DNA from: Piromyces finnis finn
Taxonomy: Eukaryota > Fungi > Neocallimastigomycota
Length of the DNA stretch: 30,481 nucleotides
Direction of reading: 5' to 3'
NCBI GenBank assembly: GCA_002104945.1
Contig: MCFH01000133.1
Coordinates: forward strand, 1 to 30,481
The translations under genes and the position numbers were made by a program. Positions 1 to 30,481 of this stretch are shown here, piece after piece. The notes under the pieces were generated by a model, which had not been told where the DNA came from, did not search any database, and saw nothing but the letters and a program-made list of their open reading frames with translations. Each line of letters opens with the position of its first letter. Position 1 is the stretch's first letter.

Positions 1-1660
1 TTTTAAAATTATTTAAATTTAAAATTAATAAAATCTAATTTCTTACTATTTTAAATATTTATATTAAATTAATAAAAATAGTTATTACCAAGTAATTCAA
101 AAGAACGTAACAATGTTAGAGCTATTATTTTAGTTCCAACCAGAGAATTAGCTGATCAAGTACACAAGCATATTAAGGAATTAACTATTTATTTACCAGA
201 TATTACTTCCATTAACATTTCTTCTGGTGAACAAAGTCAAATAAAGTAATTCTATATATTATTATTAATAACAAAAATTAAAATAGAACCAATCGAGGAC
301 TAATAAAATTAAATTTAATTTTTGAAATATACCATTTATCCTTTTTTCAAATTTAATTAACAAATAAAAAATAAAAGCTCTTTATTATCAGAAAAGCCAG
401 ATATCATTGTTGTTACTCCAAGTCGTATGCTTAAACAATTTGAATTAAAAGTAAATGTCTAAATATTATATATATTTTATTTTAATCCAATTATTACATT
501 ATGGATTAGCTTTTTCTCAAACATGACAATATGTTATTTGTTTTAAATTGAAATAATTTTAATTTTATAAAATGATATTAAAATAAAACTTATTTTTATT
601 ATACGTAATACTATATATAAATGTCGAATTAAATGAGGCATTTGAATCATTTGTTATCGATGAAGCCGATTTAATTGTTTCTTTTGGTTATGATGAAGAT
701 TTAAGAAAAATATTAAACTATTTACCAAATCTCTATCAAAGTTATTTACTTAGTGCTACTGTTGACGCCGTAAATATTTTCGTCATTTACTAATATAATA
801 TATATTTATATAATTTATAAATATTTAATATTATAGTAAAATATGATAACGTTGTATAAATATAATTTAGTATAATATAAATGACGAAAATATTTACGGC
901 GTCAACAGTAGCACTAAGTAAATACTTTGATAGAGATTTGGTAAATAGTTTAATATTTTTCTTAAATCTTCATCAAACCAAAAGAAACAATTAAATCGGC
1001 TTCATCGATAACAAATGATTCAAATGCCTCATTTAATTCGACATTCTATATAAGTATTACGTATAATAAAAATAAGTTTATTTTTAATATCATTTTATAA
1101 AATTAAAATTATTTCAATTTAAAACAAATACATATTGTCATGTTTGAGAAAAAGCTAATCCAAATGTAATAATTGGATTAAAATAAAATATATATAACTA
1201 TTTAGACATTTACTTTTAATTCAAATTGTTTAAGCATACGACTTGGAGTAACAACAATGATATCTGGCTTTTCTGAAATAAAGAGCTTTTATTTTTTATT
1301 TGTTAATTAAATTTGAAAAGGATAAATGGTATATTCAAAAATTAAATTTAATTTTATTAGTCCTCGAGGTTCTATTTTAATTTTTGTTATTAATAATAAT
1401 ATATGAATTACTTTATTTGACTTTGTTCACACAGAAATGTTAATGGAAGTAATATCTGGTAAATAAATAGTTAATTCCTTAATATGTTGTGTACTTGATC
1501 AGCTAATTCTCTGGTTGGAACTAAAATAATAGCTCTAACATTGTTACGTTCTTTTGAATTACTTGGTAATAACTATTTTTATTAATTTAAATATAAATAT
1601 TTAAAAATAGTAATGAAATTAGATTTTATTAATTTTAAAATTAAATAATTTTAAAATTCA
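1..1660. repeat. Long imperfect inverted repeat (fold-back palindrome), arms ~1-786 and ~881-1660, centre ~834
   Basis: 761-786 (gttgacgccgtaaatattttcgtcat) is the reverse complement of 881-906 (atgacgaaaatatttacggcgtcaac). 1-60 matches the reverse complement of ~1597-1657. The arms differ by scattered 1-2 nt indels. Confidence 0.95.
82..769 (+). pseudogene. DBP9: Inverted partial copy of DBP9/DDX56 exons 2-4 (82-245, 378-450, ~620-769)
   Basis: Translates to VRAIILVPTRELADQV (motif Ia), EKPDIIVVTPSRML (Ib), FVIDEADLIVSFGY (DEAD) and YLLSAT (III). The AG acceptor before exon 4 is missing in this arm but present in the other arm. Confidence 0.85.
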
Positions 1661-25318: not shown

Positions 25319-27259
25319 TTTTAATACTTAATATCAAAAATTTAAAAAAAAAAAAAAATTATAAAAAAAATTTTTTTTCATTTTTTATAGTTTTTTTTTT
25401 TTAAATTAAATTATACATTTTTTTTTTTTTTAATATAAAATTTTAATTTGTTTTAAAATTTAATTTGATAAAACTAATAATTAAAATCAAATAACCGCCA
25501 TTAAACCTATCTCTTCCATTTATTTGATTCAATATAATTAATTTTATTTTAAAGCATTAAATTTAACCAAATTTGTATATATTATTTTTTTTTTACAATT
25601 TAATAAATAAAATTATAATGTATCTTGTAAATATTAATTATAAATGGAATATCCAACATATATATATAATCGATGAATATATAGGTAAATAGATAATATT
25701 TTTATCCTATTCTTTTTTTTTAATATTAAAACAGGGAAGGTTACACGAAATTTATTAAACTCATGATAATATTTAATTTTATTAATAGTAGATATGAATA
25801 CATTTACAATATACATTTAATATATGGATTATTAATTAAAAATAAAATTTAAACTTTGGTAAAATTTAAAATTTGACCATTTTGGTCATAAGAAAATGAC
25901 TTTTAATAATAAAAGGTCAATAAGAAAAGTAAATAAGAAATTATATTAATAAATAATATTGAATATAATAAATAAATAATAAAAGATATATATATTTTTT
26001 ACTTTTTATTAAATATAATAATAGTAATAATAATAATAATAATAATGTTTTTCCATAAATTTCATTTTTTTTTTTAATTTTCTCATGAAAAATAACTATC
26101 CAATAAAAAAAAATTCTTAATAGAATTATTCATTTCATTTAAATTATTAATGTCTCCATTTATTATTAAATTTTGTTTAAAAAATAATTAAAAGTAACAT
26201 TTTCAAACCTGAACACTTTGGGTTTTTTTTTTTTTATAATATTACATTATTTTTATTCTTCTTAACTAATATAAAATAGAAATGAAATATAATAGTATTT
26301 GATATTCTTTTTTTTATTTCATTAGTCTTTTAGACCATTCTATTCATAGAAAATGATTAATTTAATAATTAATTTAATTTATTTCTAAAATGTATTATTT
26401 AAAATATAAACTGTTTTTATTATTAAATATTTAAAATAATTTAATACTTTTATAAAATAAGAAGAAAAAAACATTTAAATCCCTTTTTAGACTGATCTAT
26501 GGGATTTTTTGAAAAAATATTTGGTTAGTAACCATGCCCGAAAATTCACTTAAATCATTATTGATTATATATTATATTATTTTAAAATCTTCTTTCTTTT
26601 TTTTTTTTTAAAGTATAATAATTATTAGTTCATGGTTAAATTTTGAAAATTCTTTTCATTTTGATTAGTAATTATATAAAAGAATATTGAAGTATTTGAT
26701 GATTGCTTACATTGCTTTTTTTTTTTAATTAAATTTATATATATATATAATATACATGTATGAGCTACAATCAAATACAGTAAGAAAAGATAAGTGACTT
26801 ATCTACTTGGTGAATTTTATGTAATATTTGAAATAACTATTATTTATAAAAACAAAAATAAAATTATTTATTATATTTATTTTATATACACGATATATAT
26901 TTTCTAACTATTCAATAATAATTAGGTTTTATAATTTTTGAATAATATAAGCATTAATAAATAAAAGGTATGTGTAGAAATGAAAATAAAAAAAAATACT
27001 GTTCCTAATAAAGAAAATATAGATTTAAGTAAACGTATCTTTTAATTTTATATTTCTACTTAACATATATAGATTCATCTTCAAATACTATAAATAGAAA
27101 GAAAGATAAAATAAATAATAATGATGTTTAAAGATTACTATGAACTAAATTTACAAATGATATATAAATATTTATATGCATATCTTTTTTTTTTTTTTCC
27201 TTCTTATATTTATTATTAATATAGAGTTACATTTTATTGTAATATTTCATTTAAACTTA

Positions 27260-28239
27260 TGTATAAAAAAGAGAATTATTAGAAAGAGATTTCATCAATA
27301 ATAATTAACTAATATTACTTAAATCATTAAGAAAAAACATCAATCACAATATGTTAATATCTTACTATAGTAAAAAATTGACTCCAAAGGAATTTTTGAT
27401 AAGCTCAATGTATCTAAAGATAAGAGTATAGACAAATACAGGTCCATTGAATGAAGTAGTTGATTTAATTAATTTTAATTTTGTGTGTAAAGAGATGAAA
27501 TTTTACGATTAACCAATGGTGAAACTTTATATTTAAAATTAAAAAAAAATGGAACAGAAAAATAGTTTAAATACAAAGGAAGAAGTATATTCTGCTATGG
27601 TAACTTATGGATTTTTAATGTATATCATGATGAAAAACTTTCAATTCCAAATAATGAATTGAAAGAAGTATTTAAAGATGTAATAAAAAAAAAATTTACA
27701 TACTTTTATGATTTAATGAAAAATTCTAAGGAAATGTTAAAAAGCAACAATAACTAAAGATATAGGAACTATGAAAATATATTAGAAACTATGCATAATA
27801 ATGAAGCAACATCTTTTACAAAATATGATGAAAATACTTTAGGATTTATTATAAAATATAGTTTCTTTTATGTAGAAAAATATGAAATAGAACAAGAATC
27901 AAATGCTGGAAAAGGACGTGCTGATTTTATTTTTTATCCAAATGATAGATATAAAAACCAGTAATAATTTTAGAAATTAAGGTTGGGCATTACCAGAACA
28001 ATTATTAAACAAATATATAATAAGCAGTATTATCAAAAGGTGTTAAAAAATACAAAAAGATATTACTTGTAGGAATAAATTGCAATAAAAGAAATTATGA
28101 TTGCTTGGTAGAAAAATTTGAAAAATATAAATGTAATTTGGAAAATGATCGTTGGAGTAGAATAAGAACAAATTATAAATTAAGACCTAATCCAAAAAGA
28201 AGAAATATATATAATATACCAATAAAATTATTAAATTAA
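27260..28239 (+). pseudogene. Bacterial-type AAA-ATPase-like + PD-(D/E)XK nuclease (PDDEXK_9-type) pseudogene with internal deletion
   Basis: Fragments KTSI(T)NMLISYYSK-IDSKGIFDKLNVSKDK; NTGPLNEVVDLI; LNTKEEVYSAMVTYGFL; LSIPNNELKEVF; ENILETMHNNEATSFTKYDENTL; EQESNAGKGRADFIFYP...PVIILEIKV; ILLVGIN. Intronless, many frameshifts. Confidence 0.82.
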
Positions 28240-28364
28240 TAATTTTGATATATTTAGAAAATGATATTTATCTTGGCAAGGTATATATATATATATTTTC
28301 AAAAAAAAAATTAAATAAATGTGTATTATATTATTAATTTTACTAAAGATTACTTTAAAAAAAA

Positions 28365-28913
28365 GTCGTTCCAGTTTTTATCCTGGTTGTTAAGGCGTTT
28401 CCTTAGCATACATAAGGCTTCTGGTTCGACCCCAGATGTCAGTGCCTGTGGATTTTCCCACTGGGTTTGCCATGGGTTGGGTTATGATATTCAGGTAAGT
28501 ATAAATGAACTTTCTAATTTACTACTATGATAATAACACTCGTCTAGCCGGCCTGAGAGGGTCTAGTGTACATGGTACATTCCAAATTAGAACTTAATAA
28601 GTGGTGACTTAGGCTATGCCAAAAAACAATAATATTCCTTAATCAATTTAAGTGTAAACATTAGGGGGCGGTTGACACGTGATCAAATTGACTATAAGAG
28701 GCTTAGCATTGTAGTTGTGAAATATCGTACAACGACATGCATTTAATGTACATGGATTAAGTGAGCGTCGAAGCTGAAGAAACAGTATGACAGACCAGGA
28801 GGGTCACAACCACCTAGCAATAGGAATGAGCCAACGTTTCTCTAAGAACCATCATTGGAGCTAACTCTGATCGATGGAGAAATGCACTCGGAAGTTAAAA
28901 AAAAAAAAAAAAA
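28365..28913 (+). mobile_element. Candidate tRNA-derived SINE: tRNA-Ala-like head, GC-rich body, A17 tail, 13-bp TSD
   Basis: TACTTTAAAAAAA flanks both sides (28351-28363 and 28914-28926). B-box GGTTCGACCCC at 28423-28433. Poly(A) at 28897-28913. GC roughly 40% by eye versus under 20% in the flanks. No meaningful ORF. Confidence 0.75.
28377..28443 (+). other. Degenerate tRNA-Ala(AGC)-like head with Pol III B-box (not a functional tRNA)
   Basis: GCG-TTTCC-TTAGCAT-ACATA-AGGCT-TCTGG-TTCGACC-CCAGA has canonical tRNA spacing: anticodon loop TT-AGC-AT, 5-nt variable loop, perfect 5-bp T stem. Anticodon, D and acceptor stems do not pair. Confidence 0.75.
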
Positions 28914-29155
28914 TACTTTAAAAAAATGTTTAACAAAGTATACAATATATAAAAATTGTATTACATTTTAAAAAAAAAATATTAATATTATTAATTTAAA
29001 ATTCCAACTCTTTTTTTTTTTTTTAAACATAACATTTGAAAGTATGAAATATTAATATTATACATTTAAATTTATAATTCAAATAGAAAGAGAATTGATT
29101 AATTAAAAAGTTTTTTTTAAAAATAATATATAAAATAACTATAATTTAGGTAATA

Positions 29156-30018
29156 ATGGATAAAACTATTAAGGGATTAAAACCACTTTCAGACGATTTA
29201 AAAATCGATGGCTCAAACTACAGAATTTTAATTGTACACACTAGATGGTAATTAATATTTTAATCAGGATTTTAACTAAAACAGTAACATAATAATATCA
29301 ATAAGTAATGTTAAAATTGGATGATTAATCTTAATTCGAAATTTCATAATAAAATTATAAAAATAAAAGATTTCAACTTAAATTGCAATGGATACATCAT
29401 TTATATAATTTCAATATGCATTAGTTATAATGATTGTTTGTTTATTTAAATTTATATATATATAAAAAATAACCGAGTTTAATCCGTATATAAAATAATT
29501 TAAAATGTTTTTAAAATCTGTTTTAGTTATAAAAATAAATGTATTTAAGAACTTTCTGAAAAATTAATTTAAAAATTTTATAATAAAAAAATAGGAATTC
29601 AACTGTCGTTGATCCACTCGTTAAAGGTGCTAAGGAAACTTTAATCAATGAATATAATGTTAAAGAAGAAAACGTTTGTATCTACGGTATTCCAGGTGCA
29701 TATGAACTTCCATACACTGCTCACCATCTTATTGAAGCTGCAAAAAGAGAGTAAACCTTTCAATGCTGTTATTTGTATTGGTGTATTAATCAAGGGAAGT
29801 ACTGCTCATTTTGAATATATTTTGAAGCTGTTACTCAAGGAATTATGAGAGTAAATATTGATACCGACACCCCAGTTATTTTCGGTGTATTAACTTGTTT
29901 AAATGAAGAACAAGCTTTATTACGTGCTGGTATTGGTGAAAATAGTCATAATCATGCTATTGACTGGGCTGGAACTGCAATTGAAATGGCTAAGGTTCGC
30001 TCCATTAAAGAATTTTAA
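29156..30018 (+). CDS. RIB4: 6,7-dimethyl-8-ribityllumazine synthase (fungal type), exons 29156-29247 and 29595-30018; two apparent indels (~29745, ~29822)
   Basis: [76 protein letters not shown] match yeast Rib4 motifs. Confidence 0.93.
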
Positions 30019-30481
30019 TTTAACAATTTAAAAAACTAAAAAAAAAAAGAAAATATAATACTAGTTAATAATACATATTTATATTAGCCAATATAAAAAC
30101 CATATTAAAAAATACATATGGATTATTAAAACAAGCTCAAAAAACAAACTAAAAAACAAAATAAAAATAAAAATTAATATGCTTTTTAAAGTAATCTCTA
30201 GAAAGGGTATTTTATACATCATCCAAACAAAGATGTAGAATCATTTTTCTATATATAATGTATTGATAATGTATCATAAAAATAAAGAATGTAATAAATA
30301 GTAACCTATCATTTTCTAAAATTAATTTTTGTAATACTAAAAACAAAATAGATAATTTACTTTTACTACCACCATCAATGCTTTTATAATAAAAATAAAT
30401 TTATAAAGTGTCGAAAAAAAAAAAAAAAAACATTATTTTATAAGTAATTTCAATAGTTTATCTAAAGAGAACTTTTTATAT

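Follow-up and report, generated by a model that had tools for sequence, protein, structure and literature searches.

The known fungal SINEs are few and comprise MgSINE, Foxy, Egr1/EGH24, nrs1, SINE2-1_BG and the AfuSINEs (PMC5063351), with MgSINE of Magnaporthe grisea measuring 472 bp and occurring in about 100 copies (PMC5063351). The element described here, from the anaerobic fungus Piromyces finnis, is comparable to MgSINE, Foxy (Fusarium oxysporum) and SINE2-1_BG (Blumeria) in its length, its lack of coding capacity and a copy number between 100 and a few hundred. All four also have target-site duplications and A-rich 3' ends, and all depend on a LINE. In contrast to the other three, the P. 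finnis SINE belongs to an early-diverging lineage, the Neocallimastigomycota, and its copies are almost identical. Moreover, MgSINE, Foxy and SINE2-1_BG are described as recognisably tRNA-derived, whereas the head of the P. finnis SINE fails the tRNA tests that were run.

In mammals, Alu and B1 are mobilised by L1 in a relaxed, poly(A)-dependent manner, for which a common terminal 3' sequence is not needed. P. finnis offers a similar combination of an A-tailed SINE and an A-tailed L1-like LINE, together with duplications of 10-17 bp, a T/A-type nick and 5' truncations. Unlike in Alu and B1, the head of the SINE is not 7SL-derived, and the element carries an internal 53-nt piece of a LINE ORF end. 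CORE-SINEs and V-SINEs are modular and combine one head with different LINE-derived bodies. In a similar manner, a module of ~145 nt is common to two P. finnis families and to a relative on a metagenome contig (L102), with unrelated bodies and tails, but this module forms the 5' end and not a central core, and it includes a splice-donor-like motif. SINEs related to 5S rRNA are represented by SINE3 of zebrafish and AfuSINE3 of Aspergillus fumigatus (PMC5063351). They are matched by L102, with its 5S just upstream of the module, and not by the P. finnis copies examined, which are without 5S.

By the window we mean the whole stretch of DNA that was analysed, a contig of 30,481 nt (MCFH01000133.1). 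Its positions 28365-28913 are best explained as a single insertion of a very young, non-coding SINE family of 535 nt, and we put the probability of this explanation as a whole at about 80%. The copy was moved by a LINE, represents a new family for the Neocallimastigomycota and is not demonstrably derived from tRNA-Ala. A literature search found no papers on SINEs in Neocallimastigomycota or Piromyces, and to this extent the original prediction of an undescribed family in anaerobic fungi stands.

The insertion and its duplicate on a second contig

The GC-rich island noticed in the original prediction was recovered in the composition profile, with 532 nt of 35-42% G+C between flanks of only 11-18% G+C. 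The proposed A17 tail (A18 in the copy on contig C135) and the 13-bp target-site duplication on both sides were also found as described (Table 1). No ORF longer than 69 aa is present in the island. A RIB4 neighbour had been placed ~240 nt downstream. Its identity is supported by Pfam, and its ATG, in the same orientation as the SINE, lies 229 nt past the downstream duplication.

Table 1. Features of the SINE insertion and its surroundings, in window coordinates.
Feature	Position	Strand	Remarks
Upstream target-site duplication TACTTTAAAAAAA	28351..28363	+	from sequence reading; A at 28364 is extra and missing in the C135 duplicate
SINE body	28365..28896	+	532 nt here; 535 nt in the C135 copy and the family consensus
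5' module	28365..28504	+	consensus nt 1 to about 145; common to the L071 family and L102
A-box-like site TATCCTGGTTG	28379..28389	+	6/9 specified positions; starts 44 nt before the B box
Exact Pol III B-box consensus GGTTCGACCCC	28423..28433	+	invariant in family 1, family 2 and L102
2-nt loss (CG/GC)	28430..28436, at 28432/28433	+	the two bases are present in C135 and the other copies read
Splice-donor-like motif CAGGTAAGTAT	28492..28502	+	conserved in all three lineages
53-nt AT-rich intron-like stretch GTAAGT...CTAAT...TAG	28495..28547 (consensus nt 131-183)	+	
53-nt motif common with the LINE A ORF end	28763..28815	+	85% identity
A17 tail	28897..28913	+	11-96 A in other copies
Downstream target-site duplication TACTTTAAAAAAA	28914..28926	+	
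RIB4-like gene (6,7-dimethyl-8-ribityllumazine synthase), with introns	29156..30018	+	Pfam DMRL_synthase

A SINE copy on contig C135 (L002; C135:271738-272272, minus strand) shares its flanks and its duplication with the window insertion, and the two are therefore one and the same insertion. An empty counterpart of this site did not come to light. Over 3.5 kb (window 26865-30396 versus C135:270238-273772), the alignment contains 51 indels, nearly all of them one or two bases absent from the window, as would fit an unpolished duplicate contig. Most apparent substitutions adjoin indels. The window is thus an error-rich, indel-ridden duplicate of the C135 stretch. The C135 copy departs from the family consensus by just two substitutions, to which the window copy adds three indel events.

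The low quality of the duplicate contig affects the reading of fine details, some of which, for example a perfect T-arm, can be assembly errors. In the window copy, one of the three indel events, a 2-nt loss, turns ...GGTTCGACCCCGCAGA... into ...GGTTCGACCCCAGA... and thereby creates a perfect 5-bp T-stem that is found in this copy only. The frame of the RIB4-like gene is likewise broken in the window contig because bases are missing there.

Genes taken from the window contig will show false frameshifts (for example, RIB4 at 29749 and 29822). The entire contig (C39, 30,481 nt) seems to duplicate part of C135 redundantly, with many indels.

Nearly identical copies with marks of retroposition

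A DNA search of the P. finnis genome yielded 870 first-look candidates, and the 40 of these that were scored were all full length, with 99-100% identity. Using the last 22 nt followed by A6 as a pattern, with at most one mismatch, we found at least 274 matches in the same genome, and none with the reversed control. The family consensus is 535 nt long, as are other copies in the genome search, and 27 of 31 aligned copies are identical to it. Eleven full-length copies from an unselected sample showed 99.4-100% identity.

Both ends of the element are fixed, the 5' end as GTCGTTCC... (the copies read begin at GTCGTTCCAG) and the 3' end as ...CGGAAGTT. Behind the 3' end, the copies have 11-96 nt of pure A. 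Roughly 50 copies were checked, and each has a duplication of its own. For 38 sites with a clear repeat, the median length of the duplication is 13 bp (range 10-17 bp) and that of the tail 32 nt. In 29 of these 38 sites the nick is preceded by T (position -1), compared to a background of about 41% T. Among tail-anchored copies, which were not selected for length, about three quarters reach nt 1-4 and about a quarter are 5'-truncated. The truncated copies begin at nt 12, 19, 26, 55, 217, 318, 420, 503 and other positions, each again with its own duplication.

Near-identical copies, individual duplications, A-tails and 5' truncations together point to recent target-primed reverse transcription of the LINE type, and the element is copied through RNA by this route. 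The copy ends, duplications, tails and truncations confirm the earlier view of a non-autonomous poly(A) retroposon that is moved by LINE machinery. As expected in the original prediction, many copies with shared ends, A-tails and differing duplications are present. As is typical of SINEs, the element is short, non-coding and interspersed, with common ends, its own duplications, A-tails and truncations.

One SINE copy (in L061) has 19 extra nt (GGGGCGTAAAAGAAAGAAG), at positions 5232-5250 of L061, between the target-site duplication and G1. These could stem from an upstream start, from a template switch or from the addition of untemplated bases.

Origin and transcription of the 5' module

The original prediction derived the head from tRNA-Ala and placed the element among the SINE2. 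A true SINE2 of this kind, with a decayed tRNA-Ala(AGC) head whose A and B boxes still drive Pol III, would account for the exact B box and for the succession of TTAGCAT, 5 nt, AGG, 5 nt and GGTTCGA, which has the order and spacing of a tRNA from anticodon loop to T-loop. The head may also be similar to tRNA-Ala of other organisms. However, tRNA-Ala descent and SINE2 membership were not borne out by the tRNA searches. ARAGORN found no tRNA in the window, nor in five heads at 100, 90, 80 and 70% of its thresholds; at the 70% threshold, 27 of 300 shuffles (9%) already score. The Rfam tRNA model scored 12.5 bits on the window copy, where the gathering score is 29 and the E value was 3.8 for the 116 nt searched, and the match aligned the T-arm only, with 33 model positions deleted. 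It did not match the consensus head, family 2 (see below), an older copy (L072) or L102. General Rfam scans of the element, head, tail, family 2 and L072 also gave nothing significant. The "perfect T-arm" on which the prediction had drawn is private to the window contig, as ...GGTTCGACCCC(C)GC... stands at this point in the C135 copy, in the consensus, in family 2 and in L102, with the stem broken.

The letters of the proposed TTAGCAT anticodon loop are present, but they are not part of an anticodon-type stem-loop, and the supposed stem pairs in only 2 of 5 positions. A G in the older copy L072 would restore one pair of this stem. In the consensus folds, TTAGCA instead belongs to another conserved hairpin, as one of its two strands. 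Both RNAalifold and the folds of single sequences show TGTTAAG paired with CTTAGCA around a variable patch, as well as GTCG/CCAG paired with CTGG/CGAC. Differences among the three active lineages are concentrated at nt 31-38, and this sole hypervariable patch is one strand of the supposed anticodon stem. The head was not found to fold as a cloverleaf, and no acceptor stem can be drawn. Five genome-wide patterns for a tRNA-Ala(AGC) gene returned coding sequence, SINE variants and chance matches only. Derivation from tRNA-Ala is not supported by these results. The 5' module is too decayed, or too different, to count as tRNA-derived, and we regard a genuine tRNA-Ala SINE2 as unlikely.

The tRNA search of the genome produced about 2,900 first-look candidates. 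Identical genes for tRNA-Arg(TCT) number at least 30 and are spread over many contigs, an unusually high load of dispersed tRNA genes.

Of the promoter elements in the original prediction, the B box is exactly as claimed, and an exact match is expected only about 0.001 times per element at such composition. The A-box region is also present, at a spacing of 44, with 6 of 9 positions and no variation in the three lineages, but 10% of shuffles reach the same level. Similarly, it is true that no T5 run occurs after 28379, but this is not significant with about 0.7 runs expected from the element's own composition. The exact and conserved B box, together with the weak A-box-like site at the canonical distance, makes Pol III transcription of the SINE plausible. 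The template RNA would thus most likely be made by RNA polymerase III, and the conserved 5' module, with its exact B box and degenerate A-box-like site at tRNA-like spacing, would be the promoter.

Family 1, the most successful one, has a T5 run at nt 11-15. T5 is a Pol III terminator in some fungi, and the run therefore speaks somewhat against Pol III. It would be compatible with a non-autonomous retroposon transcribed by Pol II, in which the 5' module acts as an RNA-level element and not as a Pol III promoter, and in which a U1-binding donor motif protects or retains the polyadenylated transcript, as in the LINE 5' UTR. Such a role could explain the conservation of CAGGTAAGTAT in three lineages despite diverged surroundings, and its occurrence within GTT(A)TGATATTCAGGTAAGT, which SINE nt 119-138 have in common with the 5' UTR of LINE A (0 of 500 shuffles were as good). 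The absence of a cloverleaf and the LINE-like A-tails of up to 96 nt fit this explanation as well. On the other hand, the SINE contains no AATAAA for Pol II polyadenylation, and none of this type near its fixed 3' end, whereas LINE A has one ~27 nt before the tail. Transcription by Pol II also has to be reconciled with the exact and conserved B box, with the absence of spliced forms among at least 274 copies, and with the sharp 5' end in about 75 of 77 full-length family-1 copies. Taken together, a Pol II origin of the template appears rather improbable, and Pol III is preferred.

A second SINE family was found via pattern matches. It has about 20 or more copies (L071, positions 125-647; L073; L144-L162), which end in ...GGAAGTCT and have their own A-tails and duplications. 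Family 2 matches family 1 with 88% identity at nt 1-69, and looser homology extends to about nt 145 and includes ATTCAGGTAAGTATAA. The family 2 body of about 450 nt is unrelated to the family 1 body. L102 (metagenome contig Ga0138317_1043819) contains a third version of the module, with 75-78% identity over 142-166 nt, followed by yet another, unrelated body. In family 1, family 2 and L102, module nt 1-75 are almost invariant except for the variable patch at nt 31-38, and CAGGTAAGTA is invariant in all module versions.

The donor motif (CAGGTAAGTAT/CAGGTAAGTA) is complementary to the conserved 5' end of U1 snRNA, and it recurs with its left flank in the LINE A 5' UTR. In family 1, a 53-nt stretch begins at this motif, contains a branch-like site (CTAAT) and ends in TAG; copies that lack this intron-like stretch were not found in the genome (0 cases). 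The ~145-nt module might be a distinct anaerobic-fungal RNA module and not a tRNA relic, with expression either from the B box within it or behind a 5S rRNA gene. With a U1-binding donor in common with the LINE 5' UTR, it would repeatedly have captured different LINE-derived bodies and so founded SINE families. We consider this scenario distinctly unlikely; if it were true, the SINE head would be of an uncatalogued kind (not tRNA, 7SL or 5S itself).

The L102 contig contains a complete 5S rRNA gene (1176-1294, minus strand; 106.9 bits in Rfam), and the module homolog begins 16 nt downstream (990-1159, minus strand). A bona fide 5S gene at this distance would be in keeping with a SINE RNA that is the trailer of a 5S rRNA transcript (made from a type-1 Pol III promoter) and is trimmed to G1 before it is copied, with promoterless copies stemming from one master. 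The identity of 27 of 31 copies to the consensus would fit a single master, and the 19 extra nt before G1 in the L061 copy would also be in favor of this model. However, this extension is no closer to the L102 linker than random flanks (it ties with 2 of 83), and upstream of the heads read (about 77 of family 1 and about 20 of family 2) neither 5S nor linker is present. A search for such a master, with 5S in its 5' flank, covered 39 additional family-1 and 20 family-2 loci and yielded none. L102, a single contig, could be a template-switch chimera of reverse transcription, or 5S and module could be neighbors by chance. A 5S-linked source gene is therefore very unlikely in our view, and transcription from the B box of the module remains the preferred explanation. 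L102 itself may show the arrangement of a source gene, or it may be a SINE of another fungus that contains 5S, or else a chimeric retrocopy. Chimeric retrocopies that arise by template switching of reverse transcriptase have been described in Magnaporthe (PMC2104539).

Two further 5S connections were considered and rejected. A SINE3 with a 5S-derived head is not compatible with the sequences, as neither the element nor the DNA upstream of about 97 heads matches 5S, an adjacent 5S being found in L102 only. A 5S origin of the SINE 3' tail was dropped as the Rfam scan found nothing significant. In L102, 5S and module lie antisense in the 3' UTR region of a Snf7 gene; using the L102 SNF7 protein as a lead, we obtained two short contigs only.

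LINE A as candidate partner

One SINE copy lies within L061, a LINE with APE endonuclease and reverse transcriptase domains. A full copy of LINE A (L074) has a single ORF of 1508 aa, with human L1 ORF2p as the best PDB match (E 5e-33), ahead of R2. The C-terminal third of this ORF gave 1225 first-look candidates. The 126 that were scored have 93-97% amino acid identity, and many of them are in open frames of 1508-1521 aa. All LINE A 3' ends that were sampled are alike (...AATAAAGTTTAAAATATTTGATGCCGTT followed by A32-54), and one full copy has an 11-13 bp duplication. The same genome thus contains an abundant and intact autonomous LINE. As the SINE has similar A-tails and duplications and a 53-nt motif in common with it, we infer that this single-ORF APE and RT element supplies the enzyme.

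The 53-nt motif corresponds to the last ORF codons of LINE A. Two small hairpins are possible within it, with a single compensatory difference between SINE and LINE (GACC/GGTC versus GGCC/GGCC), and these are no more stable than those of shuffles (z -0.8 and -1.3). A comparison of the 3' ends, as suggested with the original prediction, did not reveal a relationship: the last 84 nt of the SINE are without a LINE A match (342 of 1000 shuffles were as good). In a pattern search for a LINE with a GGCC hairpin ending in ...GGAAGTY plus poly(A), no match was found, and the sampled LINE A subfamilies have one different tail. Because the common motif is internal and not terminal, the proposed partnership of SINE and LINE A is based on their co-activity and one motif.

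We also considered that the SINE could be an internally deleted LINE. This was rejected, as the SINE and LINE A have only two internal pieces in common (53 nt and about 20 nt) and neither terminus matches.

Most SINE copies are identical and the LINE ORFs are intact, and both the SINE family and the LINE therefore look active now. For this reason, they could serve as insertion-polymorphism markers for strains, could give rise to mutations close to genes (the present copy lies 229 nt before a gene of the riboflavin pathway), and might be a first step towards retrotransposition tools for these fungi, which are difficult to engineer.

Some additional observations concern the LINEs of this genome. 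In L061, positions 181-947 represent the LINE A 5' UTR, with GTTTGATATTCAG directly followed by GTAAGT at 403-421. A perfect TACTAAC box (in the 722-751 region) is located ~310 nt past the GTAAGT and 22 nt before an AG. The LINE A 5' UTR thus looks as if it contained an intron that is kept in genomic copies, and the donor side of this intron matches the SINE. In L074 (1756-2000 and 7462-7815), the first 123 nt of LINE A are tandemly duplicated at the 5' end, and this LINE A is inserted into an older, 5'-truncated LINE A copy. The best 150 RVT_1 matches (137-146 bits) come from elements, possibly LTR elements or further LINE lineages, that are distinct from LINE A and have open frames of 1250-1570 aa.
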